Source of the DNA: Penicillus capitatus
Taxonomy: Eukaryota > Plantae > Chlorophyta
DNA: 64,000 nt
Direction: 5' to 3'
NCBI GenBank assembly: GCA_965649825.1
Contig: OZ287698.1
Location: 1,441,949-1,505,948, forward strand
The notes below the pieces were generated by a model. That model worked only from the letters and a program-made list of their open reading frames with translations. It was not told the origin of the DNA and ran no database searches. A program made the translations under genes and the position numbers. Positions 5,259-43,706 of this stretch are shown here, one piece after another (the first letter of the stretch is position 1; each line of letters begins with the position of its first letter).

Positions 5259-7225
5259 CTAGGAGACTTCTTGAATGATCAATGGTTCTGCTTCGCACAG
5301 GGCAGCAGGCTGATAGGACAAGGACGAGGAAGGGCGATTTTCGCCCGTGCGATGCATACCATAGAAGAAGTAGATGCACGTCGATACGACTAAGCATGCA
5401 GCAAAACGAATATAAGCCTCTGGGCCAAGTGTCGTCAGTAGGTGTACACAACACAGCAATCCTAGACAGGAGATGAGAGGCTGCATGCTTAACGCAAATG
5501 TGGTTGGTCTAAAGATGACGGGCAGTGGTGTGAAGGACAGAACCACTGCAAAGTAACAACCTGAAAGTCACACACCGTCTCCCATATGCAGACAGTCAAT
5601 GCGGTACCGACCTATGAACAACAACCATGTCCACAGCGGCCAAGCTCTGTCGATAGAAAGGCCTTCGAAAACGCCAACGGTCACCATCAACACCAAGCGC
5701 AGAGCAATCCACCCATGGTGAACAGGTTGCACAGCATCCTCGCAACAGAAGTTGTTGGCCGACGCCACATACCTGAAATCCAGTCTGCCTTAGATTCAGG
5801 CAATAGAGAGACGGTCTGTCTACCTTCTCCAAATGGAAGACATACAGACGAGGGAGAAAACGAACAAGATGCCCATCGATGTGGTTGACGTGAGCTCGTG
5901 CAAATCCAAGAGCATCGCCATCGTTGCCGAGATAGCACCCGTCAAGACGGTGGCATACAGTGGCGTGGATGTATATCCATTCACGTTTGCCTAAACGCGC
6001 TCGGCCCTCCACCAAATGTGCAGAAAAGAACAACGCACCAAGATTTTTGGCAGGAACCCTTCTCTGGCCAGAACCATAATCATGCGACACGGTACACACA
6101 TGGCGCCAAGGAGAGAGGTAATGATGCCACACATGGCGCCAAAAGAGACAATCCGACCAGCCCAACCCCATCCAACGGTTTCGAATCCTGTCGAGAATGC
6201 AGCCATGGCATCGATCTCTTTGTATCTGCAGTAGCCATCTCCATTGCCCGACGATGGAATTTTCGAAGGTACTCACGAGACCATGCCCACAAGGGCGGTT
6301 GCCATTAGCACGTAGAGAAAGGTGCAGATTGTCAAAGAGGTCAAAATGCTTAATGGCAGATCTCTCGAGGGATTCTTCGCGTCTTCTGCCACCGTCGCTA
6401 ACGCATCAAAGCCGATAAAGGAAAAGAACACCAGAGAAGCTCCCCGAAAAACACTGGAGCTTCCAAACTCGCTGGGAAAGATGGGAACATAATTGTCTAC
6501 ATCGATGTGTGGAATGGCGGCTCCGGCAAGAAAGAGAATGACGATTAGACTGAGTGTTGTGGCGATTCCATTGAAAGTAAAGGACGCGCGGACCCCATAG
6601 GCCAACAAAGCTGTCAAGAATATGATGGTAACCGCCGCTGCAATATCAAGCTCCATCCCTCCTGCACTGTTCGATGTAAAAACCAGCGCCTTTGTATCGA
6701 TGCCTGTGAGCGTCGCTACATAGCCTGCCACGCCTTTTGCGACGGCAGAGGCCATCGTGGAATAGCTTACTAGTATACAACTTGCCGCTAGCCTAAAATG
6801 GCAGGCGGTTGAGAAGTCTACCGTCTGGAAGTCATACCAAGAAGTGGCTTCCCCAAAGACGAGATCTATGTAGTTGTAGGCCGCGCCGGAGACGGGAATG
6901 TCTGCGGCAAATTCCGAGTAGACAAGGGCGCAAAACATCGCCGCAATGCCGGCCACCGCGTAAGAGAGAATGATGGCAGGACCCGTCTGCTCGTGAGCCA
7001 CTTGGCCCGTGACGACGTAGACTCCCGCGCCGAGCATCGTCCCCACGCCGAGCAAGACCTAAACAGATCAGATTCTTCCGTAACGCGAAGGGGGGCGCTT
7101 ACGAGGTCAAGAAAACTCAAAACGCGTTCAAGCTTTCCATTGGCCGGTGCCTTGCCAACCAGTTCTTCGATGGTCGTGCATCGGAAAGCTCTTCCCCGGA
7201 ATTTCGACCAGACGCTCATAGACAT
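5259..7225 (-). CDS. CAT: Cationic amino acid transporter (APC family), copy 2, complete
   Basis: MSMSVWSKFRGRAFR..|VLLGVGTMLGAGVYVVTG..FFSFIGFDALATVAEDAKNPSRDLP..C-terminal TM region. Six GT-AG introns; the first five are at the same positions as in copy 1. Confidence 0.93.
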
Positions 7226-7241
7226 CGAAAATGATGCGCGA

Positions 7242-10103
7242 CTACATGTGCTTCTTTTTCCGTCTCTTTGGCAAACATCTGTACAGGGCAATACAAACGC
7301 AGACCAATAAGCAACCGCCAACGATTTCGTCCCCGATGCCCCAGATATAACGCCCCTGTCCACTGCACTTGAGTGGCTCTGTGCCACTCTCGATTCTCAT
7401 ACAGGCCGCCAAAAAACGTTTGGCTGTGTCTTCGATGGTAGAAAGCCTCCATGTGGCCTTTTCGAAATCCATATTGCCTGCATCACTTAACGTACGCCTC
7501 CACATCTCCACGATCTCGCCGAAATCTTTTAACAGCGCAATCAACTGTGGAGCCTCGCTCTGGACAAACTCAAATGTCCGATCCGTCGATTCCACCGATT
7601 CCAATAAACGGATGCCGTGATTGACCATCTCGATGGAGAGATCGACCGAATCGAGAATGTACGTTCGATGCAATGCATCTTTCTGAGCCTGAGAGATCTT
7701 CCATCCGGGAGATGTCATAGAAAAAGGATTGGCACCGATGGACCACATCCAGTCATGCGCAACGGCTCGATGCTCGGGACTGTATCCCAGATGAGAAGGC
7801 AGAATACCACCAAGATACTGCAGCACAGCAGCCAATGTTGCCTTGAGCGGAGCTGCCAGCATCTGCCCAACAATACTGGGTCCACACGTGATGCCCGATG
7901 GATGCTGTCCTCGATACTGACTGTTCTGCACCACGATGACCATGTCTTCCAAGGCTCTGGCAACGTAGTGTCGATCGATGAAGATCGGACGATCCCTGTC
8001 GAGGATCAGCACAAAAATCGGCACGTCTAATTGCGTCTGCTGCGTTGTCGCCGTTGTTTTCTTTTGAGGACCTGCGTCACCAAACAACTGCTTTGTTAAG
8101 AGCGATCGCAATTCGAGCGAATCGAAGTAGAGACGCTCTTCGCTCTGAAAACTCGTTTCCGTGTTCAGACTCTCCAGTGTCGACGATCGGAGCGATGCTG
8201 CTAGACTGGACGACAGGAACGGATCGTCCAAGATGTTCTGATGACGCACAACGAAATGAAATTCCTGCCGTTCCAGTTTCAATCCCATCAACTCCTTCTT
8301 CAGATTCTCCGTATCGAATGGCCTCCTCGCTTCCGTCGGGTCTCTCGGAGCATCTGTCAAGAGATAGATCCGAAACGTCACACTCTTGGCATAAGGTGTT
8401 GACACATCCATGTCCTCTGAGTTGTTGTGTTTCCATGTGAGCGTCGGTGGAATGAAGACATGACGCACGGCACGAGAGACCAAGGCCGAGGCGTGAGCCA
8501 AGAAGAGATCTTTCATGCGCCCCTCGTGTTCCATCTCTGCTACGTCGACGTCGTCGTCCATTCCGAACCATTCCAGGAAAAGTTCATCGCCGTCTCGGGC
8601 AACAAACACATTCTCGTTTCTGGAGAGCTCTGTCAAAGCGTCGTGGAGTCGCTGGCAGAAGACAGGTGGCCGAGTGGAATGCGCACAGTGTTCGGAATGA
8701 AAACGACTGAGCAGATCGATTTCGGCATCCCGCATGATGTCTTTGGGCACGTAGCCTTCCACTTTGTAAGCATGCAGGTTCTCCATGCGTTCATCTCTCT
8801 GCGTTTTCAATTTCTCCTTCAGACTCTCCGACTCTTTGTTTGCCTCCTTGGTCGGCGGTTTCTTCAGGAAATAGTCTTCGATAGAAGGCAGCGTGGATAG
8901 GGTCTTCACACCATCGCCGCCAACAAGCGGTCCCCAGTCAACTGGTTTGGCGGCCAAATCGATCAAGATCCATCGTCGATGCCCTGCCCACATGTCAAGA
9001 GCACAGCCCTCTTCAGGTTCAAGCACGCGGAGTCCGCCCGCCCCAGATATCGTCGATCGATGATTGGCGTTTTTCGACAGCAGACTCAGAATCTCTGTCA
9101 GTGGCGCATCTCCATGCATTCCTTTCATCAGAACAACGTCTCTGAGAACTTTGAGATCCGGGTGCAGTCTTTGCAGTATCTTCATCCGCTGTTGGATCCA
9201 GGACTGGATTTGGTAGGACCACATGCCGCTCTCTTGCATCAAGGACTTCACGTCAAATTTCTCGTTGTGTCGTGCAGGATGCCATCGTCTGCTTACCAAA
9301 TCCTGTCCCGGTGGAATCGGCATGTGATTTGCGTAACTTCCTGCCAGCTTCTTCAGTTTCAGGACGGCGTCCGGCGAGATGGACAGGTAATCGATTTCTG
9401 CTTTGGAGAATCCGGCTCTGTAGACATACGCATCATCGAGATCTGGATTGATCAGCAGGATATTGTAACTCCACAGAATTCCCAATTCCGCCAGCATTCC
9501 GTCAATGACCCCTTCCAGTGATGCGACATCCACTTGATACTCCGATGTCTGGCCGCCAAAACTGTCGGGTCGTGAAAGCGCCTTCAGCATTTCTGCAAAT
9601 TGCAAAGAGAGCTCCGATGTCACCTCAATCGCATGGACAGATACATTGTAGTGCACGTAGCTGTGCAATGGCTTCGGTTTTCGAACAGATTCGAAATGCA
9701 GACACATGCCATCTTCTTTGCACGTCAGTTCACTCAGAGGCACTCGGGTATGCGGCAGAATGTGATCCAAAGTGGAGAACCATTCGTGCAATTCCTCCGG
9801 TCGGATCTGAACCTTTGTCCTTCCATCCCCATCGAACCCAATGAGCACCACATTGACTGGAATGGGCAGATGAATGCCTTCGACGGACGAGAGACCGAGA
9901 TATGCAGCGACATCTGATGACTCGGCGAATACATCCGGATCGTCGAATGTGCGTTTGTGCAACTCCCGAACGCGCGAGAGTTCGTCCGATTCCCATGACA
10001 GCGCTGAAGGTCCTGAGCCGAAAAGATGTGCCGAGTGAACGACATCGACGAAGAACGCGACCAGGGCGAAGAGACGAAGACGCGTCATTAAATTCCGTAC
10101 CAT
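7242..10103 (-). CDS. Conserved uncharacterised membrane-anchored protein, similar to Arabidopsis At5g58100 (953 aa)
   Basis: Intronless ORF with an N-terminal signal peptide, IPVNVVLIGFDGDG..RPEELHEWFSTLDHILPHTRVP (recalled match to the plant family), and a C-terminal TM followed by a basic tail. Alternative start at 10088. Confidence 0.8.
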   Translation of the reverse strand: MVRNLMTRLRLFALVAFFVDVVHSAHLFGSGPSALSWESDELSRVRELHKRTFDDPDVFAESSDVAAYLGLSSVEGIHLPIPVNVVLIGFDGDGRTKVQIRPEELHEWFSTLDHILPHTRVPLSELTCKEDGMCLHFESVRKPKPLHSYVHYNVSVHAIEVTSELSLQFAEMLKALSRPDSFGGQTSEYQVDVASLEGVIDGMLAELGILWSYNILLINPDLDDAYVYRAGFSKAEIDYLSISPDAVLKLKKLAGSYANHMPIPPGQDLVSRRWHPARHNEKFDVKSLMQESGMWSYQIQSWIQQRMKILQRLHPDLKVLRDVVLMKGMHGDAPLTEILSLLSKNANHRSTISGAGGLRVLEPEEGCALDMWAGHRRWILIDLAAKPVDWGPLVGGDGVKTLSTLPSIEDYFLKKPPTKEANKESESLKEKLKTQRDERMENLHAYKVEGYVPKDIMRDAEIDLLSRFHSEHCAHSTRPPVFCQRLHDALTELSRNENVFVARDGDELFLEWFGMDDDVDVAEMEHEGRMKDLFLAHASALVSRAVRHVFIPPTLTWKHNNSEDMDVSTPYAKSVTFRIYLLTDAPRDPTEARRPFDTENLKKELMGLKLERQEFHFVVRHQNILDDPFLSSSLAASLRSSTLESLNTETSFQSEERLYFDSLELRSLLTKQLFGDAGPQKKTTATTQQTQLDVPIFVLILDRDRPIFIDRHYVARALEDMVIVVQNSQYRGQHPSGITCGPSIVGQMLAAPLKATLAAVLQYLGGILPSHLGYSPEHRAVAHDWMWSIGANPFSMTSPGWKISQAQKDALHRTYILDSVDLSIEMVNHGIRLLESVESTDRTFEFVQSEAPQLIALLKDFGEIVEMWRRTLSDAGNMDFEKATWRLSTIEDTAKRFLAACMRIESGTEPLKCSGQGRYIWGIGDEIVGGCLLVCVCIALYRCLPKRRKKKHM

Positions 10104-11039: not shown

Positions 11040-14000
11040 ATGAACTCGTCGAAATCACAAAACTCTGAAGTGAAGGAGAGGTCGAGCGCGTCGTCGTCGA
11101 ATACGTTCTCTGTCTCTCTCGAGGAACTTAGAGAATTAAATCTCGTACGACGTTCTCTGTCCGAGGCAGCGGAATATATCTTCTTCGTTCGTAGGACAAG
11201 GAACTCAGTGCGATAAATCGAAAAGGAGGAGTTGCTGGCATCGCTGAAGCACTGCACGTAAACTTGTCGACGGGGCTGACCTCAGAAGAAAGTTCACAGT
11301 GGAGTATTGAGGCGCGTCACGAAGTGTTCGGCAGCAATGTGATGAAAGAAATATCCCCAAAAAATTTCTTCGCACTCGTTATGGAGCAATTAGAAGACCC
11401 AATTATCATACTGCTGATCCTGGCTGCCCTAGTACCTTACTGAATTAGGTGGGCTTCTGCGAGGAACTGCACTCTAGGCGAGTACGATACTTGGCGTCTC
11501 AATCAAGGAAGAACGGGAGGATGAAGGGTGGATTGATGGCGTGGCGATTTGGGTTGCCGTCTTTGTCGTCGCACTGGTCGGAGCCTTAAACGACTATCAA
11601 AAGGATCAGCAGTTTCGAAAGCTGAACGCCCAGAAAGAGGTCTTTGATGTCACCGTTATTCGAGATGGCACGGAATCGCTGGTCAAAAACTCGGATTTGG
11701 TGGTGGGCGATGTCCTCGTCCTCAACACTGGCGATCGGGTGACAGCTGACGGATTGCTTTTCCACAACAATGACCTCATCATCGACGAGGCGAGTCTGAC
11801 AGGAGAAAGCGAGCCTTTAAAAAAACGGGTAGACGGAGATCCCTTCTGTCGATCCGGAACACAGGTCACAGAGGGGAGTGGCCGTGTCTTGATTATTGCG
11901 GTTGGAGAACACAGCGAATGGGGACAAACATTAGCGCTGGTGACGGGGGATACAGAGGAGACGCCACTTCAGGAGAAGTTGGGAGATCTTGCTGCCGCCA
12001 TCGGCAAACTTGGTTTCTTTGTGGCAATTTGCTCCTTTGTGGTCTTGATGATTAGGTCCATCCACTCCTGTCTCTAACAGAGATACTGAATGGGCTGCGT
12101 TGTCAGATGGTGTGTGCAGGAGAAGGGTTTCCCGTTGGACAAGATCAACGATGATGGCCCTGTTCAGTTCTTTCTCTTTGCTGTTACTATCGTGGTCGTT
12201 GCGGTACCTGAGGGACTTCCACTGGCAGTGACCATTTCACTTGCGTACTCTATGCGCAAGATGATGAAGGATAATAACTTCGTGAGAGTGCTAGCAGCGT
12301 GCGAAACAATGGGCGGTTCGGATGATGATTTCCGGCAGATCTCCATTGAGTGCTTTCCGTAAATGTCTTTTAGGTGCAACGACGATCTGTTCGGATAAAA
12401 CGGGGACGCTTACGGAGAACCTTATGACTGTGGTGGGAGGTTGGTTTCAGGGGAAGACGCACTTAGTGACACCTCAGAGAAACCATTTGGCCGAGCACGT
12501 GCGACATCACATCGTTCTGAACGCGGCACTCAACTCTAAAGTCTGTGACCTGTCTATCAATTACGCATGCGATATCCCTACTGGCACTCAGGCTTTCCTT
12601 ATCGAAGAAGAGACCGGAAGAGTCACGTTTGTTGGGAATCGAACAGAATGTGCTCTGTTGATGATGATTCGAGAGTGGGATGAAAAGTATCAACAAATCC
12701 GGCAGCAGTACGAGAACAACATGATAAAGGTAGCTGACCTTCATGAGTGCCTTGCACCTGCCCGCGAGTCATGTCTCCTCAGGTTTACGGATTCAGTTCA
12801 GCAAAAAAGATGGCCAGCGTCATTGTCAGGGATAACGATGTCATGAAAATACTTAATAAGGTTCGGCACATAATCGGCACTTCTCTGTCTTTTTGCATGG
12901 ATGCATATGCGCAGGGCGCTGCGGAAATGGTCTTGGAACTGTGCACACACTACGTCAATGAAGATGGAGACATCCAAGAGATCACGCCAGAGTACAAGCA
13001 AGAAACAATGGAAAAGATTCAAAGTAGGCACAGCTTTGCATCAGAGTGTTCCTCATTTTGGTTCAAGCAATGGCATCTCGTGGACTGAGAACACTAGCGT
13101 TGGCCTATCAGGAATTGGAGGAGGGACGCTATAGCTTTGGCCCGGACGGAGAAGCTTTGGACGAACCCATTGATGGACTGTTTGGTTTCAAAGAAGCTCC
13201 CGAACACCATCTTATCCTCACGGCCATCGTTGGAATCAAGGCATGTACCATGGCAGCCGTATTCGTCTCAAGCATGTCTGGCGTCGCAGGATCCAGTCAG
13301 AAAAGAAGTGCCAGGTGCTGTGGACCAGTGCAAGAAGGCAGGCATTATGGTACGCATGGTGACGGGAGATAACATTCACACAGCGAAGCACATTGCACGA
13401 GAATGCGGCATCTACTCCAATGGTATTGCCTTGGAGGGACCACAGTTTCGTAGAATGGCAGAAACCAATAAAGAGGAATTGCTTCGAGACTTGCCTCGTC
13501 TGCAGGCAGGGCGCACTCCCTCTTCCATTCTTAATCTCCTCCTCATGTATGGTGGATGTTTAGGTGCTGGCAAGGTCAAGCCCAACAGACAAGCACACCC
13601 TCGTCAGCTTGTTACGTGGCCAGGGAGAAGTTGTGGCTGTAACTGGCGATGGCACTAACGACGCCCCTGCCTTGAAGGAATCTGATGTGGGATTGGCTAT
13701 GGGCATTGCCGGCACTGAGGTGGCGAAAGAAGCAGCAGATATCGTCATTCTGGATGACAACTTCTCCTCGATCGTCAAGGCTGTCCTGTGGGGGCGCTCT
13801 GTGTTCAACAACATCCGGAAATTTCTGCAATTTCAGCTGACGGTGAACGTTGTTGCTCTCATTGTGGCCTTCATTGCGGCGGTTGTGGGCGGCGAGACGC
13901 CACTCAATGTGTTGCAACTGCTCTGGGTCAATCTTATCATGGACACTCTGGCAGCGCTTGCCTTGGCAACAGAAAACCCAACCCCGGATCTGTTAGATCA

Positions 14001-14881
14001 CCAACCCTATGGCAGGAACGAACCGTTGATTAGTCCGACCATGTGGAAGCACATTCTGCTACAGTCGCTCTATCAGCTCCTGTTCATCTTCGTCATTCTC
14101 TATGCATTCCCTAATATGATTGATCGGTCTGTCTCTCAACTGTCTTTCTGAGTAAGACATCTGATGTGGGCGATAGATACAAGATTCCAAAGGAGGAAGA
14201 GTGGTACTACGATCACATCTGTTTTCCCAACGAGGACGGGCGTGATGCGCTCGAAGACTGTTCACAACTGTTCAGATGCAACCCCGATGAAGAGAAATGT
14301 TATCCATTGTCAGATGATTCGGATGTCGATCAGGGGCGCCTGGACTCTTTGAAAGATGACTACGAAGAGGAACACGATGACAGAGAAATGCGAAAAAACT
14401 CAATCATTTTCAACATCTTCATCTTCATGCAGGTCGGCCGATGATAAGCGGCATGAGTTCTCTTTTACGCTTTTGTGTGGACTAGGTCTTTAACGAGTTG
14501 AATGCGCGGAAGATCAATAATGAGTACAACATTTTTCACCAGATTTTCGACAGTCCGATCTTTATTTCTATATTCGTTGGAATTGCTGGCCTTCAAGTCT
14601 CTTCCAGAAGCAGTTGATTCGATTTGAGTGACTTTGTGTGACCTCCAGGTGATTATAATGATGACGCCAATGCGAGATTTCTTCAAAGTTGACAAACTCA
14701 CGAACATGGAATGGTTGCTGTCGATGATCATTGGTTTCGGCGTCGTGCCCTACAGTTGGCTCATTCGATTTATTCTAAGGTTCACTTTTTCTCACTCTTT
14801 CTTCTTGACGATATGGATTATAGATCCCGCGAGAAAGCCACAGACATCTCAATCCAAGCTCCGGCTGTTGATGGAGTTTGA
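11040..14881 (+). CDS. ACA: P2B-type Ca2+-transporting ATPase (ACA/PMCA-like)
   Basis: Motifs [43 protein letters not shown] and [11 protein letters not shown]. Fourteen short introns, two of them GC-AG. Confidence 0.96.
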
Positions 14882-19800: not shown

Positions 19801-19832
19801 CGCTCTGATTGTATTATCCATTATTCGAGACG

Positions 19833-20648
19833 ATGTTTGTTTGCCATACACCTCCTTTTCGTGCACGCGGCCGTCGTGGACCCTGTCGCGGCTGGCGCAC
19901 CTGTCATGGACCGTACGGCGGCGGCTTCTCTATGCGCCATCACGGCTTCCCTCTTCACATTCACCCATGCGAAGGACGCTTCCGCCCCGTCGAGCTCTAC
20001 GACACCGAATTAGAAGACGTCGGCCATGAATACTCTTTCCGTCGCGCCATTCCTGGCATTCCACCAGAACAGCTTGAAATCGTCGTCGAAGGACCGATGT
20101 TGACAGTGAGGACGTTGACAGAGGTTCCCGGACAGCGCTTTGAGTGGCGTGTCGCGATTCCGGATGACGTGTCCAACGAATGCATTACGGCCGAAGTCAC
20201 AAACGGATTCCTCCACGTCCGCATGCCCAAGATGCTTCCTCGTGCCATTCCGGTATCCGTTTCCAATACCGACCAAGACTTGTGGAAGCTGGAGCACTGG
20301 GGGAGTGAGTACCGTTTGACGCATCCAGCCCCGGGCGTCCACCCCAACGATGTCGTCGTCAACGTCGAGGAAGGATTTATTTTTGTCAAAGTTCAAGGGC
20401 CCAATGCCCGTTTTTCGAGAGAAGTCAGTTTGCCGCCAGCTGTTGATGTCGATGCCATTATGGTAGACATCGAAAACGGACAATTGATCGTGACCCTGCC
20501 CAAGTATGAACGCGATGAGATTCGCGTTCACTGCGCCACAGAGAGGACTGTGAATGAGGCTGGACCGAGTGCTCCGCCTGACAACGACGCCATTTCTGAT
20601 GAAGAAGACGCTTTGTACGACGAGGCACGTCGCTATGAGGACCAGTGA
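19833..20648 (+). CDS. Small heat-shock-like protein with two tandem alpha-crystallin domains
   Basis: Intronless. IPGIPPEQLEIVVE..ITAEVTNGFLHVRMPK and APGVHPNDVVVNVE..IMVDIENGQLIVTLPK; acidic tail. Confidence 0.8.
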   Translation: MFVCHTPPFRARGRRGPCRGWRTCHGPYGGGFSMRHHGFPLHIHPCEGRFRPVELYDTELEDVGHEYSFRRAIPGIPPEQLEIVVEGPMLTVRTLTEVPGQRFEWRVAIPDDVSNECITAEVTNGFLHVRMPKMLPRAIPVSVSNTDQDLWKLEHWGSEYRLTHPAPGVHPNDVVVNVEEGFIFVKVQGPNARFSREVSLPPAVDVDAIMVDIENGQLIVTLPKYERDEIRVHCATERTVNEAGPSAPPDNDAISDEEDALYDEARRYEDQ

Positions 20649-25118: not shown

Positions 25119-26373
25119 CTAGACATCGACAAGTGCGACATTGAAGCCCACAACGATACTTCCCGAGATCGTCACTCCTTTCTTCGGCTTCAGATCCGGA
25201 TCATTAGAAGGTCCCAGTTCCAAAGTGAGAGTAAAGTTCTCCTCTCCTTTCTGACAAACACCACCCATTGCCACCAAGGCACAACCTTCAGACAAAGAGA
25301 GATCGGCGATCACATGTCAGAATGAAAATCTCGTTACCCAAAAAATCGTCTGGAGAATTCGTGTCATGATCCCAGACATTGAACTCGATGACATCGTTGC
25401 TGGACTCGTTAGATTCGCCCAATTCGTACTTTGACATGTTCCATTTTGGCTCCAAACTTTTCATGATGACCTCCGAGACACAGCGGCGTCCTTTGTACTT
25501 TATCTCTACGAAGCAATCCGATGTTCGAGGTCCAAAATAGGGACGATCTGAAGCGGCCAAGTTCGTTCCTTCAACAGCCCATGTGTAAACTCTATATCTC
25601 TTTGCCAGAACAGCCGGCTCCAAAATGATCTGATCTAGCGACATGGTGTACACCACTTCCTTCACGGTACGCCCAGATGCCGTTTCCCCAAGGGCAGTAA
25701 ATTTCCACCAGGACCCCACACGCGTGAACACGCCCAAGATAGCAGCACTCGTATCAAAACTACGTGCCTTAAAGCACAGGAGATCGCGGGATTTTTTGTC
25801 CTCGTCATCCCAAGACAGTTTCATCATCATATCTGTCACATCACTCAATGTCTTGCCCTTTGAATAGACCGTAGCTACCACCAACAAGTGATAGACACTC
25901 GGCGGGACATTGTCAAAATCCACCTAGACACACACGAGGCATCGAAATGGTAGGGGAATCTATCCACAGCAGCACATACCAGCATCTCTTCATTGATATC
26001 CGTTCCTTCGAGGACCGTTCCATTGCGGTCATCGTTCAGATGCGTCGCCGAGACGTAGTGGCTTTTCTTCTTGTCCCACCACAAGACGTCCACGCATTTC
26101 ATGTCGACATTGTAGATAGCCAGAGACACGTCTATGTCGATGCCGTCTGCTTTCCAACCGCATCCAACCTTTCCGGTCTTGACACGCCCGTCGAGGAGAT
26201 ACGTATCGTTGGATTGCATTTCAACACAGCTCTCTAAGCTTCCTGCATTTTTCGGCAAATCAGGTTGCAAATGCACTGCGCACAAGAAAACGGATGAGAC
26301 GAATTTGTCTGTCGCTTAGGCACAGCGTACCCTTTGGTACCTCTTGTCCGTTTGCTTTCTCGGTTGTCGCCAT
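25119..26373 (-). CDS. TerD-like domain + C2 domain protein, paralog 1
   Basis: Three introns. GCGWKADGIDIDVSLAIY..DVLWWD..HLNDDRNG..EEML|VDFDNVPPSVYHLLVVATVYS..WWKFTALG is TerD-like. It is followed by a C2 domain (EGTNLAASD..SDCFV..WDHDTNSPDDFLG). Confidence 0.8.
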
Positions 26374-26458
26374 TGACGCCGCCGTCGATAAACGTGGAGA
26401 TCCAAAAATCGTTAGGTACTAATAAACAGAACAAACGGACCGATTCGACGTTCGCGTC

Positions 26459-27215
26459 ATGTTCAGTTTCTTTCCTTTCAGTTGTTGTTCACTGCTATCT
26501 GCCTTTCCTTTTGGAAACCAACAGACGCCTTATGCTATAGCTCGCCGAGAACGCTTAGCGAACAAAAACACAGGTGCCCTCTCGAGACAGCACGGTGGTT
26601 TTTGTATGAACATTGCCGCGGGCTGTCTGTCACAGTCTTAATAAAGGGGGTAAGGTACTTTCTACCCAACAAACCCAGAGGACATGGCGGTCACCGTATG
26701 AAGTCCGTTCCAATTGCTTTGCGAGCTCCGGAAAAGCCAAATGAAGGCGGCGAGAAAACCGTACTCATCTCTCCATTGGAAGGAACAAATCTGATGCCTC
26801 TTGATCGCCATACATTTGCTCGACCCCTCTCGGACCCCTACATCAAGTTTTTCTTTAAAGACAAAATGGATATGACGGAAGTGCAAGAGAGGACACTGAA
26901 TCCTGTCTTCGAGACAGGGAGGATGAATCTGGGCAAACTGGATCCCAATGACACACACGTTATCGAAATCCAGTACTGGGATTATGACATAGTGCTGTCC
27001 GATGAGTTAGGCGGCGTTGCTCGATTTTCAGTTGCCGGCCTCTTGGCAGCAACGAAGGGACGTTCTGGTCCGCTCTTTGCACCTGTCACTTCATTATGCG
27101 CGAAAAGGCTTGTTATTTAGGTTCAGTATGGGTCAAGCTGCAGCCAAGCGACAGCCAGCTTAGAAGGAAGAAGAAGGTCACTGGACACATCCGCATCGGG
27201 ATCAATGTGAAATGA
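26459..27215 (+). CDS. Single C2-domain protein A
   Basis: Same two-intron structure as B-D. EGTNLMPLD..SDPYIK..WDYDIVLSDELG..RRKKKVTGHIRIGINVK. The only in-frame ATG is at 26459. Confidence 0.8.
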
Positions 27216-27510
27216 GCCGATACACAAGTAGAAGATCTGCTAGATCTAGCACATGTGCAGAATAGCGTTCAGCAGCGTCGTTTGTGGTTTGTTTGTGCAA
27301 TTATCTGAGGCTTATTGAGCACGTAGTTATGACAGTCGAATGAGCACAGTGCTTTGTTAAATGAGTTCGATTTGAACGACAGCAGATGCGACGACGTGAT
27401 GTGACGTAAACTTCTCTTCTGCGGCACTATCCTTCGTCCTTTGCCTTTGCCATCTGTATTTCCATCTCGAAGCATCCGGAACGCCTCGTGGCTTATTGCG
27501 CCTAGAAGAC

Positions 27511-28162
27511 ATGACGAGTCAAACTACAGGTGCTCTCTCGTGACAGCAAGGGTGTTCTGTATAAATGCCTCGGTGGTCTGCCACAGTGAAATTCGAAGGG
27601 ACGGAGTACCAATTACCCACCAAGCCAAAAGAACATGTGAGCCCTGAGATGACGACCGTCCCAATTGATTTGCCAATCCCGGAGACGCCAAACAACGGCG
27701 ATGCGAAAACGATGTACATTTCTGCACTGGCTGGGAGAGAGCTCACACCTCTGGATCGTCATGGACTCGCACGGCCTACCTCGGATCCCTACATCAAGAT
27801 TTTCTTCAAGGAGGATGTAGGGATGACAGAAGTGCAAGAGAAGACACTGAATCCGACCTTTGAGACGGGAAGGTTGGATTTGGGCTTGCTGGACCCCAAC
27901 GACACACAGGTTATCGAAATCCAATACTGGGACTATGACCGAGTAACAAACGATGATTTTGGCGGCGCTGCTCGCATCTCTATTGCTGGTCTACTGGCAG
28001 CAACGAAAGGGCATTCAGGTGTTGTTTTCACATCCGTCACATCATTTGTGTCATGTACTGCTTGTAGGTCAAGTGTGGGTTAAGCTGCATCCAAGCGACG
28101 ATCAGCTCAGGAGGAGAAAGAAGATTACCGGTGACATTCTCATCGGGGTCAATGTGAAATGA
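27511..28162 (+). CDS. Single C2-domain protein B
   Basis: MTSQTT|VKFEG..LTPLD..SDPYIK..WDYDRVTNDDFG|..RRRKKITGDILIGVNVK. Confidence 0.88.
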
Positions 28163-28558
28163 GCTATCAAGCAGAAGATCATTATTAGAATCACATGTTA
28201 TGCAAAACTTAATACAGAAACGACGTTTGGGGTATGTTTGTTTATCCACCCGAGATTCAGGACACGTTGTGGGTTCAAATGAACGCATAGAAACAATGCA
28301 TCATTGTTGACGACTGACTCGAATAGTTTTGAATCTGACGCACGATCCTGGATATTTTGCGTCCGCCTTCCATGGCAGCATCGTCGATGAAACCAGACAG
28401 AAAACAGTGTTGAGTACAAAAGGTGGGTTAGATGTGACGTGACGTCAGCGCATCTTCTGTTTGTTGGCTTCCTTATTTAGTCTCCTTCGCCGTTACCGTC
28501 TGCAAATTCATTTTGAGATTTTCCAACCCATCGTGGTTCCTTCCTCCTAAAACAATCG

Positions 28559-29210
28559 ATGAGTAAAAACACAGGTACTCCTCCCGCTCGTGGCAGCACC
28601 TTTCTTGCATCAATGCTTCTATGGTTTCCCACAGTTGTGGTCGAAGGGATGGAGTACTATTTACCCATCAAGCCCCGAAAGCACGCGAGTCCTTCGACAA
28701 AGACCGTCCCAATTGATTTGCTAGTTCCGGAGACGCCAAACGACGGCGTTCCGAAGAACGTACTGATGTCTGCTCTGGCTGGGAAAGATCTCATCCCTCT
28801 CGATCGTCATGGACCCGCACGGCCGACATCGGATCCCTACATCAAACTGTTCTTTAAGGAAGAGGTGGTGATTACAGAAGTCCAGGAGAAGACAGTGGAG
28901 CCGCTTTTTGAAACGGGGAGGATGGATTTGGGCTTGCTGGACCCCAACGACACACAGGTTATCGAAATCCAATACTGGGACTATGACCGTGTAACGAACG
29001 ATGATTTTGGCGGCGCTGCTCGCATCTCTATTGCTGGTCTACTGGCAGCAACAAAAGGGCATTCAGGTCTTGTCTTCACATCCGTCACATCATTTGTGTC
29101 ATGTACTGCTTGCAGGTCAAGTGTGGGTCAAGCTGCATCCAAGCGACCATCAGCTCCATTGGAAGAAGAAAATCACCGGAGAGATTCTCATCGGGATCAA
29201 TGTGAAATGA
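28559..29210 (+). CDS. Single C2-domain protein C
   Basis: MSKNT|VVVEG..LIPLD..SDPYIK..WDYDRVTNDDFG|..WKKKITGEILIGINVK. Confidence 0.88.
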
Positions 29211-29649
29211 GCTGTTGCGTAACACAAAACGCCGCACAGTTTATGTACGATATGGAAATGGCAACCACATTTCTGGTCTACTTGCTCATTCATCAGAAAT
29301 TCAGGAAGTACAGCAGCAAAAGCGGACAATCAAGAAGCACAATGTGTCGTACATGAACTCAGCCTGAGTGGCTGTGGATGTGGATGCGACGCTCGATCTT
29401 GGCTGTGTTGGTCCTCCATTCGCTTTCTTGTCCTTGTGTAACACTATCCATCATTCGTGGAATCAGATTCAAAGAACCGTTACGCAGCACGCATGACAGT
29501 TGACGCTTCATGATCGGCAGATAAATGCTGCTACCGTAATTCTTCTTTCGTTCGTTTGTTAGTTTCCATCGTCGCTTCGCGGTTTACTCCTCTGCCTTTT
29601 CAAACCGCAACCAACGAACGCTTCTTGGCCATTTTTTCGTGAATCTGCA

Positions 29650-30303
29650 ATGGGTCAGAAGCGTACAGGTGACCCTTCTTTTCTTCGGACCATCATTTTT
29701 CGCTGAAACGCATGTATGCGCTGTAGTCATTGTAGGAGACCAACAATACTATCTGCCCGTGAAGTCCAAAGAACACCGTCGTCCGTCGACGAAGAACGTT
29801 CCAATTGAACTCCTCACTCCCGCAACGCCAAATGGCGGCCACATGAAAACCGTGGTTATTTCCATACTGAGCGGGAGAAATCTTTCGCCGATTGATTTCC
29901 ATATATTCCATCGCAACTCCTTGGACCCTTACGTCAAAGTCTTCTTCAGAGATAACACGTGTCGGACGGAAACGCGTAAGAGAGACGTCAATCCGACTTT
30001 CGAGTCGGGAAGAATGAATCTGGGTCAGTTAGATCCCAACAACACGCACGTGATCGAAATTCAGGTCTGGGATCACGACCTATTAACGAGAGACGATTTC
30101 GCCGGCGCCGCCAAGATTTCGATCGCCGGTTTGCTAGCTAAGACCCATGGACATTCGGGTCATGTTCTCCCACCCGTCACATCATTTGTCTCACGTGCTT
30201 CTCTGTAGGTCAAGTCTGGGTCAAACTTCATCCAAGTGATAGCCAACGTAAGAAAAGAAAAATGATCACGGGAGAAATCCTCGTCGGTGTTCAAGTTCAG
30301 TAA
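29650..30303 (+). CDS. Single C2-domain protein D (MGQKRT N-terminus)
   Basis: MGQKRT|VIVG..LSPID..LDPYVK..WDHDLLTRDDFAG|..RKKRKMITGEILVGVQVQ. Confidence 0.88.
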
Positions 30304-30565
30304 CTTGTCATTTCGCACAATATCTATCTCTACTGGCACCAGCCAGATTTCGTTAATGTTGCACTTGAATCGAACCTTGCTGTATGATAGTGTCGTCGTC
30401 ATGCAGTGTCGGAATAGTCGTTGCAGAAATGATTTGTCCATTAGGAACAATGCATTTGTAAAACAACGATTCAAAAATGAAACGTTTGGCGCAACGTCCG
30501 TCGGTTGTTCACTTCGATGTCTGCTTCGGCGTCTTCCTTCGTCTTCCCCAACAAGCCTAGTGATC

Positions 30566-31725
30566 ATGCTGACCCTACCACCGATGAAAGTGCGTGTACA
30601 ACTATCGTTGAACAGACCGCCAGCATTGCGTACTGTAGTCGAAATCCAGTTCGTCCCGGATTTCCTCCTAAAGAACAAGGCGGTCGAATGCGTTGCCGTT
30701 CAATCCGGAGATTCGGCTGCGTTAGACCCTCGTCTCGAATCCATGGCGCTGAATTTTGGATGGACGTTCAAAGATGACGAAGCAAGATTTGACGTGGATT
30801 CTTCTCTGGCTCTCTTTCGGAAAGATTTCACCGCCGTCGATTTTGTCTGGTGGGATCACCGTGCATCCAGATGCGGCGCTGTACACTTCTTGTCTCATGA
30901 CAACAAGGAAGGCACAGGCAGTGGAACAAAAGAGAGCATCAACGTGAAACTCAACAAGATCCCAGATGCTGTTCATTACTTAGTCGTTGTGGTGAGCGTC
31001 TACTCAAAGGACCACGACATCGAAGACATTCGAGACATTTCTCTATCCGTCGAGAATCCTTCCAATGAACGCCTCGTCGATTACAAGGTCGTGTATGGTG
31101 CATTCTGGGAATCTGTCTTTGATGTGACGTGCAGGTGAAAGTGAGAGGAACTGGAAGAAGTGTATTGCTGGGATGTTTTGTGCGTAAAGCCGAGGCATGG
31201 ACGTTTCGGGCGCTGTCCGAGTGTGTGTTCTCGCGAACGATTCTGGAGCTGCTGCACGAACCAACAAATCTGCAAGCAGTACGTGAGATCCAAGCGGCTC
31301 CCCGTGTGCGCCGCCGCCTCGTTATACAGCCCACCGAGGGGAAGAATCTGACGCCTATGGACTTCACGCTTTTCAAGAAGAGATCGGATCCTTATCTCAA
31401 AATCTTTGTCGACGATCGCGTCGTCGTTTCGGAGATCGCGTTCGCGACACTCAATCCGAAATTCATTTGTCAGCCCATCGATCTCGGCGAAGTCTCGTCC
31501 ACCTCAGCCAAGGTCATCGAGATTCAGTGCTGGGACTACGACAAATTTACGAAACACGATATCATGGGAGTGCACAAATTCTGCCTCGGAGGACTGGTGG
31601 CCAAAATGAATGCCGGTGAGAATGCTGTCTGGCTGAAGCTCTTTCCATCGGCCGAGAACATTAAAGACAAAAAGAAGATCACGGGAGACATTCTGTTCAA
31701 AGTCCTGGTCGAAGAATTCCAGTAG
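30566..31725 (+). CDS. TerD-like domain + C2 domain protein, paralog 2
   Basis: Two introns. NFGWTFKD..FDVDSSLALF..DFVWWD..HDNKEGTGSGTKESINVKLNKIPDAVHYLVVVVSVYS..AWTFRAL is TerD-like, followed by C2 (EGKNLTPMD..SDPYLK..WDYDKFTKHDIMG). The start codon is uncertain. Confidence 0.82.
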
Positions 31726-34362: not shown

Positions 34363-34995
34363 GGGAGATTTGATGTGTGCAGACATTCCGTGGTTTGGTC
34401 CGGTGGGAGCATGCAGAGTTGCCATGATCGATGGCAGTCTTGTTGTCCATCCTCCCACGCAGTCACTGAGCGACACCCAGATGTCGGTGTTAGTGGCCGG
34501 GACACGAGACAGAGTCGTCATGTTCGAGGCCGAGGGTCAGGCGGTACGTCGCGAACGAAACAAGCACCTGCTGGTTGTGTGTTTGAGTGGCTGGCTGTTC
34601 AGATGTCGGTGGATCAAGTGTCCAAGGCGCTGGATCTGGCACACGCCGAGTGTCGGTCGATGATCGATTCTCAATGGGAGCTCTCTCGCAGAAGACAGCA
34701 GAAGAAACGTCAGATCAAGTGCTTTGGTGCAGATCCCGTAGCCGCGGAGAGAATCTTGGTATCCTCACAGTGGCTGAGGACTGATGGATGACGGATGGTG
34801 TAGAATCTAGCACTGCCAGAGTTCGACAAGCTCTACTCCCTTCCAAGAGACAAAGCCACAAGTTCAGAACTCCGCAGACAAATCAAGGACGACGTCGAGA
34901 AGATCCTCGAGCAGCGCGGTGCCATGCGTTCAGATTTTGCCAGAATCGTATAGCCTGCATACCAGACACCGCCATCCTGTGCGACATGTGTGTGA
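34363..34995 (+). repeat. Near-identical duplicate of an internal PNPase gene segment (source 41273-41905)
   Basis: Offset is 6910 nt. There are two mismatches in the first 17 nt, then identity by eye to the end, including introns. Confidence 0.93.
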
Positions 34996-40746: not shown

Positions 40747-43706
40747 ATGTCGCTTACCGGTGCATCCGGCACTGCTCTTCCGGTTCGTCCATGCCGCAAA
40801 GATCCCCTACCTTCAGCCGTTCGCTTTCGTCCAGTGGCCACGCGGATCGGCGATCGTGACGTTGTATGGAAAGCAGATGGTTTTGGCCGTCTCGCCTCCG
40901 GCAGCTGTACTCTACATTTTGGCAAAACGACCGTGTTCGCTGCCGCTGTGTGTCCTGCTGTTCAGACATTTACATTTCACAAAGTGGTCTTTAATGTGGG
41001 CGGCCACACTTACCCGAGATACAAAACGTCAGTTGGTGGGTGTAGGTGGAGTACAGGGAACGTCTGAGTGCAACGGGACGTTTTCCACACACCAGGGATC
41101 GATATGAGAGTCCTGTCAGAGACCGAGAGCTGCGTCTTGGGCGTTGCATCGATCGCGCATTGCGTCCTCTCTTTCCTCTTCATATGTCACACGATATCTC
41201 TATCAGCACGTCGGTTCTTTCTGCAAGCGCAGACGACGTGGATCCCGTCACAGTCGCCATCAATGCAACATCGGGAGCTTTGATGTGTTCAGACATTCCG
41301 TGGTTTGGTCCGGTGGGAGCATGCAGAGTTGCCATGATCGATGGCAGTCTTGTTGTCCATCCTCCCACGCAGTCACTGAGCGACACCCAGATGTCGGTGT
41401 TAGTGGCCGGGACACGAGACAGAGTCGTCATGTTCGAGGCCGAGGGTCAGGCGGTACGTCGCGAACGAAACAAGCACCTGCTGGTTGTGTGTTTGAGTGG
41501 CTGGCTGTTCAGATGTCGGTGGATCAAGTGTCCAAGGCGCTGGATCTGGCACACGCCGAGTGTCGGTCGATGATCGATTCTCAATGGGAGCTCTCTCGCA
41601 GAAGACAGCAGAAGAAACGTCAGATCAAGTGCTTTGGTGCAGATCCCGTAGCCGCGGAGAGAATCTTGGTATCCTCACAGTGGCTGAGGACTGATGGATG
41701 ACGGATGGTGTAGAATCTAGCACTGCCAGAGTTCGACAAGCTCTACTCCCTTCCAAGAGACAAAGCCACAAGTTCAGAACTCCGCAGACAAATCAAGGAC
41801 GACGTCGAGAAGATCCTCGAGCAGCGCGGTGCCATGCGTTCAGATTTTGCCAGAATCGTATAGCCTGCATACCAGACACCGCCATCCTGTGCGACATGTG
41901 TGTGATGGGCAGCCCGGCTCTGGTTGCGTGTCTAAGACAGATCTTGTTTTCGGAATTTCGATGGCAGAGAACAGAATTCTGCGGAACAACATTTTGTCAA
42001 AAGGCATCCGACTAGACGGACGTCTCACACACGAGATCCGTTCTATGAATTGTCAAGTGCGGCCAATGCTGTCGCACTCGTTTTGTTAAGTGATGCATAT
42101 GGTTTGTGTCAGACAAAGCTGTTTCCCATGGTCCACGGTTCAGCATTGTTCGAGAAAGGCGAAACGCAGTCTCTCTGCACGGCAACGGTGCTGTTCTCTC
42201 ACTCATGGCACGAAGATGTGCAAGCAGATGTGGCAGTCTAGATCGGAAGCGGAGTGGACAGACATACAATGCCTGATTTGTTCAACAAGAGAGAAAAGCG
42301 TTTAGTCGTGCATTACTCTCTACCAAACTACGCGACAAACCAAATCCGACGAGTCCAAGGAGTGAATCTCTTAGAGAGGGAATATTGCTTCTTGATCGGT
42401 CACTCTTTTCTGTCCCATCTTTCCGTGCAACGCTGAACCTGTTTGTAGAGAAGGCTCTAGCGGGAGTACTGCCATCTGCCGACGACTTTCCTTTTTCTAT
42501 GCACCTGATCGTCGACACGATATCGTCCAACGGTTCATCCGCCTTGGTGCGAAGCTATCCTGTCGATCTCGGAGGGTGGGGTGATATGTGATCCCCGTGA
42601 CAGACTGCTCTTTGCGGAGGATCTCTGGCTTTGGCGGATGCAGGCGTCCCCCTTCGATGCTGCATTGCAGGTCTCTTGCTACGTTCCCTCTTGACAGCGT
42701 TCGACAGAAGTGTTGCTCAGGAATCAGCGTCGGGATGGTGACAGATGTCGAGAAAGACTTCTGCGAACATGAAGTCGGAGGCGAGATCTACACCGAAGAT
42801 ACAGCAACTGCCGAAGCAGTCTACCAACAGGCACATCTGCTAACAGGTCTCTCCACTTGAGGACCTAAAACGCAATCGAGATGGGATCGATTAGATATTC
42901 AAGAGATTGAAGATATCCATGGGGATATGGACTTCAAGATTGCTGCCAGCGAGGACGGTCTAGCAGCCCTTCAACTGGATAGTAAATTACCAGGTAATGC
43001 CTGACACATGACGCTCTTCGTCTTTGCACAGTACGGTTTGGCAACCAAGGTGGGGTCACTCTCGAGACAGTAAAATTGGCATTGGAACAGTCAAGACAGC
43101 CAATACAGCAGGTGCTGCGTCGCCTGCAAGAGGAGCTCTCACAGAAAGCGCCGTCAGAATGTCCGATCGTCGAGAAGACGAATATCAATCGCGAAAACAT
43201 GGTATCTTCCTCCCGATCGCACAGTCCCTTGCGATTTTACTGTTCTCTGTGTCAGAGCCTCATCATCGGCAAAGACGGCACACAGATTCGGAAACTGGAG
43301 GACGAAACCGGCGTCCAATTGATACTGCAGTCAACAGGCGATGCAGCCATCTACGCTCGGACGGCCGACCAGATGAAGCAAGCCAAAAAGCGGATCCTCG
43401 ATCTACAAGGACTCACCATCCACGAAGGCATTTCACCCCACCGCTTGCCATCTCATCCATCGATGACATATTGGATGGCACACAGGTGCTGTGTACGAAG
43501 CCAAGGTTGTACAGCTCTTGGACTACGGTGCCTATGTGGAGCTACCCAATGGATTCAACGTTTTGCTACATATCTCACAACTGGCACACGATCGTTTTGC
43601 CTCAGTGAAAGATATCTTGAAAGAGGGTCAGCTCGTAAATGTAAAGTGCATTGGGAGAGATGACCATGGAAATATACTCCTCTCTCGAAAGGAGCTTTTG
43701 GAATGA
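40747..43706 (+). CDS. PNP: Divergent organellar polyribonucleotide nucleotidyltransferase (PNPase) with KH and S1 domains
   Basis: [65 protein letters not shown] and YGAYVEL. About eleven introns, the last GC-AG. Confidence 0.88.

Follow-up and report, generated by a model that had tools for sequence, protein, structure and literature searches.

A cluster of TerD-C2 and single-C2 genes in the green alga Penicillus capitatus encodes candidate Ca2+-dependent membrane-binding proteins

Gene content and layout of the cluster

We analysed a stretch of 64,000 nucleotides from the green alga Penicillus capitatus (assembly GCA_965649825.1, contig OZ287698.1, positions 1,441,949 to 1,505,948 of the forward strand; below, the window, with positions counted from its first letter) and identified a cluster of six intron-bearing genes at 25119-31725, all of which encode a C2 domain. 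Two of them (g1 on the minus strand and g6 on the plus strand) encode a TerD domain followed by a C2 domain, and the four plus-strand genes between them (g2-g5) encode a single C2 domain. Judged by its sequence, the cluster is real, conserved and so far undescribed, and is built from known parts. The gene models were derived from reading frames, splice-site consensus and the alignment of the four paralogous units. The window has about 50% G+C and short GT..AG introns, and those of g1-g6 are 47-62 nt long. The genes and the spacer between the two divergent ones are as follows.

25119..26373, minus strand: g1, TerD-C2, 363 residues; four exons (26373-26331, 26275-25980, 25923-25338, 25285-25119)
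26374..26458, between strands: g1-g2 spacer, 85 bp between divergent start codons
26459..27215, plus strand: g2, single-C2, 213 residues from the upstream ATG; exons 26459-26573, 26636-27067, 27121-27215
27511..28162, plus strand: g3, single-C2, 181 residues; exons 27511-27529, 27587-28018, 28068-28162
28559..29210, plus strand: g4, single-C2, 180 residues; exons 28559-28574, 28635-29066, 29116-29210
29650..30303, plus strand: g5, single-C2, 181 residues, starting MGQKRT; exons 29650-29668, 29727-30158, 30209-30303
30517..31725, plus strand: g6, TerD-C2, 370 residues; exons 30517-30589, 30639-31087, 31135-31725

A first-pass annotation, made from the letters alone, had proposed six C2 domains with two TerD-C2 fusions bracketing four single-C2 genes that share intron positions. 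All of this holds: every domain scores above its Pfam gathering cut-off, both introns of g2-g5 agree in site and phase, and the proposed ends of the array are the stop codons of g1 (25119) and g6 (31725). Intron 1 of g2-g5 (57-62 nt, phase 1) lies behind a first exon of 5-6 codons, and intron 2 (49-53 nt, phase 1) falls within the Gly codon of the motif G(H/R)SG|(Q/S)VW. The intron in the C2 region of g1 is at a different site (after DDFLG; the three g1 introns measure 55, 56 and 52 nt and are all GT..AG), and the C2 domain of g6 contains no intron (its two introns, of 49 and 47 nt, lie elsewhere). The genes are closely packed, with same-strand spacers from g2 to g6 of 295, 396, 439 and 213 nt; the 85 bp between g1 and g2 are presumed to be a shared bidirectional promoter region. 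The nucleotide identity between g4 and g3 is 81%. Family hidden Markov models (HMMs) run on a six-frame translation of the whole window found no further C2 or TerD copies outside 25119-31725, and no catalytic or transmembrane domain was recognisable in the products of the cluster genes.

The g2 gene does not have the ATG common to g3-g5, and its start is an in-frame ATG 96 nt upstream. This gives the protein a hydrophobic, Cys-rich N-terminal extension of 38 codons (MFSFFPFSCCSLLSAFPFG...; within 26459-26573). The extension was considered as a possible membrane anchor: its ATG and frame are kept in a sister genome (L003, described below), but its ratio of nonsynonymous to synonymous substitution rates (dN/dS) of about 1.3 is neutral, with no detectable constraint. 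The conserved parts of g2 are constrained (dN/dS 0.19 for the leader and 0.17 for the C2 domain). N-myristoylation of g5 (MGQKRT) was not adopted, as the sister orthologue reads MGRRTI, with no Ser/Thr at position 6. We also considered whether the units could be parts of one long ferlin-like gene with multiple C2 domains; this is ruled out by each unit's own ATG mini-exon and by its stop codon, which is kept in the sister genome, and a distant locus (L007, below) that carries two separate open reading frames (ORFs) speaks against it as well.

C2 domains, their predicted Ca2+ ligands and the basic loop

On the spliced proteins, the Pfam C2 model (PF00168, gathering cut-off 22 bits) detected all six domains at 38-60 bits and E-values from 2e-9 to 3e-16 (g1 4e-13, g2 1.9e-9, g3 7e-13, g4 4e-11, g5 3e-16, g6 2e-11). 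Ligand positions were read against synaptotagmin-1 C2A (D172, D178, D230, D232 and D238). As the first-pass annotation had claimed, the acidic loop residues are kept: the five equivalent positions are acidic in all six domains, Asp throughout but for the last position of g2, which is Glu, and they are also kept in nearly all relatives that we examined. The claim that a basic loop is strongest in the five plus-strand copies agrees with the counts too, with 5, 5, 3, 5 and 4 Lys/Arg residues before the last strand in g2, g3, g4, g5 and g6 vs. 2 in g1.

To place this loop on the fold, we used an AlphaFold2 model of P0001, a g6-type protein that is 52% identical to g6 (15-row alignment). The model has a mean predicted local distance difference test score (pLDDT) of 82.7 and a predicted template modelling score (pTM) of 0.74; its first 37 residues (the leader) are predicted to be disordered, the C2 domain has a single strand (229-239) ahead of Ca2+ loop 1, and the basic loop is followed by the last strand (354-363). 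Foldseek matched the C-terminal domain of the model to the C2 domains of Munc13-1 (C2B), cPLA2, perforin, a Trichomonas protein, CAR1/4, extended synaptotagmins and ferlins; among these, cPLA2, perforin and CAR have type II C2 domains. None of the matches was a solved structure with both TerD and C2. The model points to a circularly permuted type II (PLC-delta/cPLA2-like) topology for the C2 domain. In type II C2 domains, the loop at this place connects the two positions that are the chain ends of a type I domain, on the Ca2+-binding face. Given this textbook relation and the predicted type II topology, the basic beta7-beta8 loop should flank the Ca2+ site, and we place it there provisionally.

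TerD domains

The Pfam TerD model (PF02342, gathering cut-off 25.3 bits) matches g1 at 49.1 bits (E 6e-13) and g6 at 79.3 bits (E 3e-22), so that the HMM check proposed in the first-pass annotation is positive for all six C2 and both TerD domains. Foldseek aligned the N-terminal domain of the P0001 model with the TerD/SCP2 structures 3ibz, 2qz7, 2kxt and 9a6r_B at template modelling (TM) scores of about 0.7.

We mapped the metal sites by alignment onto Klebsiella pneumoniae TerD, in which the Ca1 ligands are residues 40, 41, 42, 78, 79 and 89 and the Ca2 ligands are residues 29, 82, 84 and 88 (PMC8779313). The Ca1 site is kept in both proteins (D, V, D, D, N, E in g6 and D, I, D, D, D, E in g1). 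The Ca2 site is incomplete: g6 has Lys instead of Asp88, and g1 has Asn there together with an insertion of 3 residues in the loop. In the g6-type relatives P0001-P0003, position 88 is Arg and positions 82 and 84 are non-Gly residues, and positions 78/79, which are Ca1 ligands, are deleted in P0001/P0003 and read His/Ala in P0002. The bacterial-type motif GD(D/N)xTGEGGGDDE is kept in Caulerpa g6215, Mesostigma, Amoebidium and others, some with minor variants. The proposal that the TerD domains bind Ca2+ thus stands in part, for the Ca1 ligands of g1 and g6, and does not extend to the Ca2 site, which has lost Asp88.

Conservation in a sister genome

For comparison we used two contigs, L003 and L005, of the ENA assembly ERZ26696514, onto which the gene models of the window were projected. 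The two contigs are 98-99% identical to each other and are read as haplotypes of one genome. Both are collinear with positions 24.6-34.4 kb of the window at 78% nucleotide identity, and L003 contains all six genes in identical order and with one-to-one orthology. Every splice site is kept in the projected L003 models except the acceptor of intron 2 in g5' (the g5 orthologue), which reads AT.

Between the window and L003, synonymous divergence (dS) is 0.42-0.71 and dN/dS is 0.08 for g1 (whose orthologue is 92% identical), 0.28 for g2, 0.18 for g3, 0.15 for g4, 0.16 for g5 and 0.15 for g6. Because these ratios are all low (0.08-0.28), we regard the six genes as protein-coding and under purifying selection. 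Two lesions were observed in the sister genome: in g5' of L003 (~5700-5830), the Trp codon of the WDxD Ca2+ loop has become a premature stop (TGG>TAG), and a 1.1-kb deletion in L005 (6650-7400) produces an in-frame g4'/g5' chimera.

Distribution of the TerD-C2 architecture

Among 5.8 billion proteins, a word-seeded search with g6 gave eight matches and one with g3 gave five. Beyond the latter, an exhaustive search added one member to the single-C2 subfamily, and a scan of metagenomes added another; the remaining 13 metagenome loci of the scan encode generic C2 proteins (24-36% identity). An exhaustive HMMER search with a TerD-C2 profile returned 5142 proteins, most of them multi-C2 or multi-TerD. 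Within the best 150 of the 5142, the profile aligns in one stretch over TerD and C2 alike with about 24 representatives (of clusters at 50% identity). Named carriers of TerD-C2 include Bryopsis, Ostreobium, Caulerpa, Mesostigma, Incisomonas, Amoebidium, Acrasis and MMETSP transcriptomes, and the proteins are labelled 'hypothetical' or 'C2 domain-containing' (one JGI member is named 'stress response protein SCP2'). Bryopsidales contain several TerD-C2 subfamilies (g1-type, g6-type, P0004-type, P0013 and P0017).

From these sequence matches, the TerD-C2 fusion appears old or widely spread among eukaryotes, and the single-C2 subfamily and the array appear confined to a narrow green-algal lineage. 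The suggestion that the system is lineage-specific is therefore kept for the single-C2 subfamily and the array and dropped for the TerD-C2 fusion, which is scattered across eukaryotes. The literature search gave no account of the family, in line with the first-pass annotation, which did not recognise the array as a described one; no description of a TerD-C2 fusion was found either, and the 2012 survey of the Ter system by Anantharaman and colleagues could mention one.

Distant relatives and the history of the cluster

Three further loci with related genes were compared: L006 (a 2.7-kb metagenome scaffold), L007 (JGI, 1841 nt) and L001 (a 59.7-kb contig of SRR23272282). On L006, a single-C2 gene (46% identity) and a g1-type gene (55-63%) lie head-to-head, an arrangement that recurs in L003 and L005. 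L001 (7144-11440) carries a g1-type gene head-to-head with a TerD-C2 gene of a third type (P0004/Bryopsis-type), which points to a divergent pair of fusion genes in an ancestor. L007 (1-1841) contains two ORFs separated by 125 nt, the first of them single-C2 (33-578; 61% identical to g3) and the second a TerD-C2 ORF of the g6 type (704-1813). The contig is intron-free, with none of the four introns found in the corresponding genes of the window: both exon junctions of g3 are already joined, and the exon junction CATTCAG|GTCAAGTGTGGGT is the junction predicted for the window. The L007 spacer carries TGTAA. L007 may represent a dicistronic or read-through mRNA, or neighbouring transcripts that were merged into one. 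Other relatives are also full-length ORFs without introns on short contigs, which we took as a sign of expression and splicing; P0001-P0003 are of this kind (52-53% identical to g6), and independent g6-type contigs are monocistronic, with leaders of 29-80 nt.

In neighbour-joining trees of the C2 region, the single-C2 proteins form a clade with 98% bootstrap support, and the g1-type proteins, including Caulerpa g9279.t1, form one with 96%. With a bootstrap of 57%, the g6-type and P0004-type fusions join the single-C2 genes, and the canonical TerD-C2 proteins fall outside. Within the tree of single-C2 proteins, the members from L007, L006 (P0171) and P0122 lie outside the g2-g5 clade. The ancestral unit was likely made up of three genes, namely a g1-type gene, an oppositely oriented single-C2 gene and a g6-type gene, and in what would be the simplest history the single-C2 gene was amplified to four before the lineages of the window and L003 split.

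The single-C2 proteins have a 50-residue leader with the consensus ...Y.LP.KP.EH..P....VPI.L..PE.PN.G. When an HMM of this leader was run against a set of 21 sequences, it matched only the extreme N-termini of g6-type proteins, with E-values of 1e-4 to 3e-3 in four of the five; that of the fifth, P0001, was E 0.08, below the inclusion threshold. Pairwise BLAST of the leader gave no significant match. Most likely, and with moderate support, the single-C2 genes arose from a g6-like TerD-C2 gene by loss of TerD and were then duplicated in tandem.

Proposed function and alternative explanations

We consider it reasonably probable that the cluster encodes Ca2+ sensors that are soluble, have no enzymatic activity and attach to anionic membranes when Ca2+ rises. 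The first-pass annotation had also proposed Ca2+-dependent membrane binding, and the ligands, the basic loop and the fold agree with it as far as sequence goes. In the proposed mechanism, a rise in cytosolic Ca2+ would cause the proteins to dock on anionic phospholipid membranes, through Ca2+ bridging by the C2 loops and through the electrostatics of the Lys/Arg-rich loop, and the docked proteins would act as sensors or adaptors. In g1 and g6, the TerD beta-sandwich may add one Ca2+ site, and the leader common to single-C2 and g6-type proteins may bind a common partner. The tight and conserved head-to-head and tandem arrangement suggests that the genes are co-regulated.

Several points weigh against this proposal. 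The family is in flux, with g5 disrupted or fused in the sister genome and the original start of g2 lost, so that not every copy is needed. The Ca2+ binding of TerD is partly degenerate, and the g6-type relatives have lost more of it. Where the basic loop lies relative to the Ca2+ site is taken from textbook topology and from the predicted secondary structure of a homologue with 52% identity, and the origin by TerD loss, backed by a 57% bootstrap and a weak leader match, has moderate support.

As to the process that such sensors would serve, sealing of the membrane and cytoplasm at wounds, which the first-pass annotation had named as an example, is our leading candidate, put forward tentatively. 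In its specific form, in which wound-triggered sealing in a siphonous alga is the dedicated role of the proteins and Ca2+ entering at the wound recruits them to patch or aggregate membranes, the idea fits the biology of these algae and is still rather unlikely. The nearest named relatives are from Caulerpa, Bryopsis and Ostreobium, giant coenocytes with fast wound healing (PMC11441479), and Bryopsidales hold several TerD-C2 subfamilies; Ca2+-dependent repair of membranes is carried out by C2 proteins such as ferlins, whose C2 domains turn up among both the sequence and the fold matches. However, the per-domain score of ferlins is no better than that of synaptotagmin or protein kinase C (17.5 vs. 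22.6 bits), C2 and TerD are absent from the wound-related families listed in the Halimeda and Bryopsis genome papers, and TerD-C2 proteins are present in small unicellular protists without such wound biology. A special affinity to ferlins was rejected: the best single-domain score belongs to synaptotagmin-1 C2A, and ferlins rank high among PDB matches because several weak domain matches are summed. A more elaborate version is speculative, namely that g1-type, single-C2 and g6-type proteins are a three-component Ca2+-sensor module of siphonous green algae, held together as a co-regulated and possibly co-transcribed cluster, that lets wounded or extruded coenocytic cytoplasm re-enclose itself in membrane within seconds to minutes.

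We are equally doubtful that one polycistronic mRNA serves the same-strand genes, or a minimum of g6 and the single-C2 gene before it. Such mRNAs have reportedly been found in other green algae (by Gallaher and colleagues, in 2021). L007, with its single-C2 and g6-type ORFs 125 nt apart, its introns gone and its junction as predicted, makes co-transcription possible, and the spacers in the window are only 213-439 nt long. Yet L007 is a single contig, assemblers can merge overlapping transcripts of neighbours, and the other contigs with g6-type genes, with their short leaders, are monocistronic. The spacers of the window hold 6-10 ATGs, the TGTAA of the L007 spacer also counts against co-transcription, and every one of the single-C2 genes starts with a conserved mini-exon that supplies an ATG.

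It is improbable, in our view, that the array belongs to stress responses or biotic conflict and evolves by birth and death, like the tandem TerD paralogues of bacterial ter operons, apart from any membrane repair. Tandem amplification, a copy number that differs between haplotypes, one pseudogene and one chimera would fit such a family, as would the JGI member of the wider family named after SCP2 and the small heat-shock gene 5 kb away. Low dN/dS in every copy, with no sign of diversifying selection, argues against it, and so do orthologues that remain one-to-one across a dS of about 0.5 and the window's lack of other ter-system genes (no terB, terC, terA/Z or other ter gene was found in it by Pfam). 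Least probable of all is that the proteins are Ca2+-independent scaffolds or partly decaying duplicates whose C2/TerD folds are kept and whose metal binding is unused: the degenerate TerD motif of g1 and g6 (largely lost in P0001-P0003), the dispensable g5 of the sister genome and the lost start of g2 would suit it, but all six copies and nearly all relatives keep the five acidic C2 ligands, which would be unexpected without selection for metal binding, and every copy is under purifying selection.

Proteins that dock on membranes in response to Ca2+ thus remain the reading that we prefer. C2 and TerD are each a well-known Ca2+-binding beta-sandwich, and we found no description of their fusion, though at least five supergroups of eukaryotes possess it. 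Among the relatives of giant coenocytic seaweeds, it has branched into several subfamilies and appears to have yielded a TerD-less derivative, and the genes remain clustered. The cluster therefore provides testable candidates for the Ca2+ sensors behind the extremely fast wound sealing of coenocytic seaweeds, with orthologues in Bryopsis, for which RNA interference (PMC12961179) and a genome exist, and it would offer a clean natural experiment on what TerD adds to C2. Should the proteins serve ordinary Ca2+ signalling, the cluster would still be a tidy case of domain loss and tandem amplification.

Neighbouring genes and other observations

The neighbours with Pfam matches in the window are a small heat-shock gene, a P-type ATPase, a replication protein A (RPA) gene and a PfkB kinase; the other flanking ORFs have no match. 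The small heat-shock gene (19809-20648, plus strand) encodes two HSP20/alpha-crystallin-type domains and is kept beside the cluster in L003 and L005. The exons of the P-type cation ATPase (11541-14151, plus strand) encode E1-E2 ATPase and Cation_ATPase_C domains, and by its sequence the product looks like a plasma-membrane-type Ca2+ pump; its location about 11 kb from a cluster of putative Ca2+ sensors is probably a coincidence. A neighbouring single-exon gene (7242-10103) encodes 953 residues, and its best named relative is from Caulerpa lentillifera (48%), the next named one being from a land plant (28%). Together with the named TerD-C2 relatives from Bryopsis, Ostreobium and Caulerpa, a few proteins in all, this makes an alliance of the alga with the siphonous Bryopsidales most likely. 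The ORF of g1 exon 3 also occurs in the ENA assembly ERZ25074695, where it lies on a contig of 635 kb with 42x coverage.

A 633-bp direct repeat (34363-34995 and 41273-41905, 99.7% identical), part of an RNase PH/PNPase-like gene, brackets about 6.3 kb with an ORF for an RPA C-terminal domain and an ORF for a PfkB (adenosine-kinase-like) protein. The sister contig L003 has one copy of the repeat, and its RNase PH gene directly adjoins g6'; the difference could be an insertion here, a deletion in L003 or an assembly artefact.

Within the cluster, the g1-g2 spacer and three of the four spacers between same-strand genes contain TGACG(T/C)-like motifs; the motifs carry too little information for any claim. 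They include the bZIP/CRE-like TGACGT motifs GATGTGACGTAA and GATGTGACGTGACGTCA (27380-27420 and 28440-28470), about 110 nt upstream of the starts of g3 and g4, two occurrences that are not independent because g3 and g4 are recent duplicates. Farther away, a single-exon ORF of 565 residues (53752-55449, minus strand) gave no exact match in the protein collection. By eye, its N-terminus is signal-like, its core resembles a glycosyltransferase, and a Cys pattern resembling ShK stands ahead of a C-terminal hydrophobic segment.

Comparison with known systems

Copines/BONZAI proteins are soluble Ca2+-dependent membrane binders in which C2 is joined to a non-catalytic second domain, as in g1 and g6, and BON1 is among the fold matches. 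They differ in architecture: in copines, a von Willebrand A domain comes after two C2 domains, whereas here TerD precedes a single C2 domain (Pfam finds only these). Ferlins (dysferlin, myoferlin and otoferlin) share Ca2+- and lipid-regulated C2 domains and are implicated in membrane repair; they are the top PDB sequence matches by summed score and also occur among the fold matches. Unlike the proteins described here, which have one C2 domain and no anchor, ferlins are about 1800-2100 residues long; they contain Fer/DysF regions as well as five to seven C2 domains and are anchored in the membrane by their C-terminus.

The Arabidopsis proteins CAR1 and CAR4 resemble the single-C2 proteins more closely in build, as small soluble one-C2 proteins in multiple copies, and CAR proteins bind membranes in a Ca2+-dependent way; the CAR structures 5a52 and 5a4x match the fold of P0001 at a TM score of about 0.6. 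However, the sequence similarity is generic (E 0.0025), the helix and beta-hairpin insertion of CAR proteins is missing here (according to predicted secondary structure and a gap-free family alignment), and CAR proteins show no counterpart of the Pro-rich N-terminal leader or of the linkage to TerD-C2 genes.

The TerD domains share with bacterial TerD (K. pneumoniae 2KXT, Streptomyces 3IBZ, and SCP2) the beta-sandwich (TM score of about 0.7) and the conserved Ca1 ligands, and bacterial TerD paralogues likewise form tandem gene sets. In contrast to these, g1 and g6 are eukaryotic and intron-bearing, are fused to C2 and have an incomplete Ca2 site. A eukaryotic TerD-family protein is known in CABP1 of Dictyostelium.

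Closest of all are the TerD-C2 proteins of other eukaryotes: GMH36837.1 of Bryopsis sp. KO-2023, CAD7703874.1 of Ostreobium quekettii, g6215.t1 and g9279.t1 of Caulerpa lentillifera, Mv04944 and Mv21123 of Mesostigma viride, KAL0479230.1 of Acrasis kona, and those of Amoebidium parasiticum and Incisomonas marina. All have TerD followed by C2, a conserved linker and identical Ca2+ ligands in C2. Unlike g1 and g6, in which the TerD motif is partly lost, the non-bryopsidalean forms and Caulerpa g6215 mostly keep GD(D/N)xTGEGGGDDE. A cluster with TerD-less derivatives was not seen outside this lineage, genomic context having been viewed for a minority of the other members. Within this wider family, g1 falls with Caulerpa g9279.t1, and the forms from Bryopsis and Ostreobium fall with g6 and the single-C2 genes.

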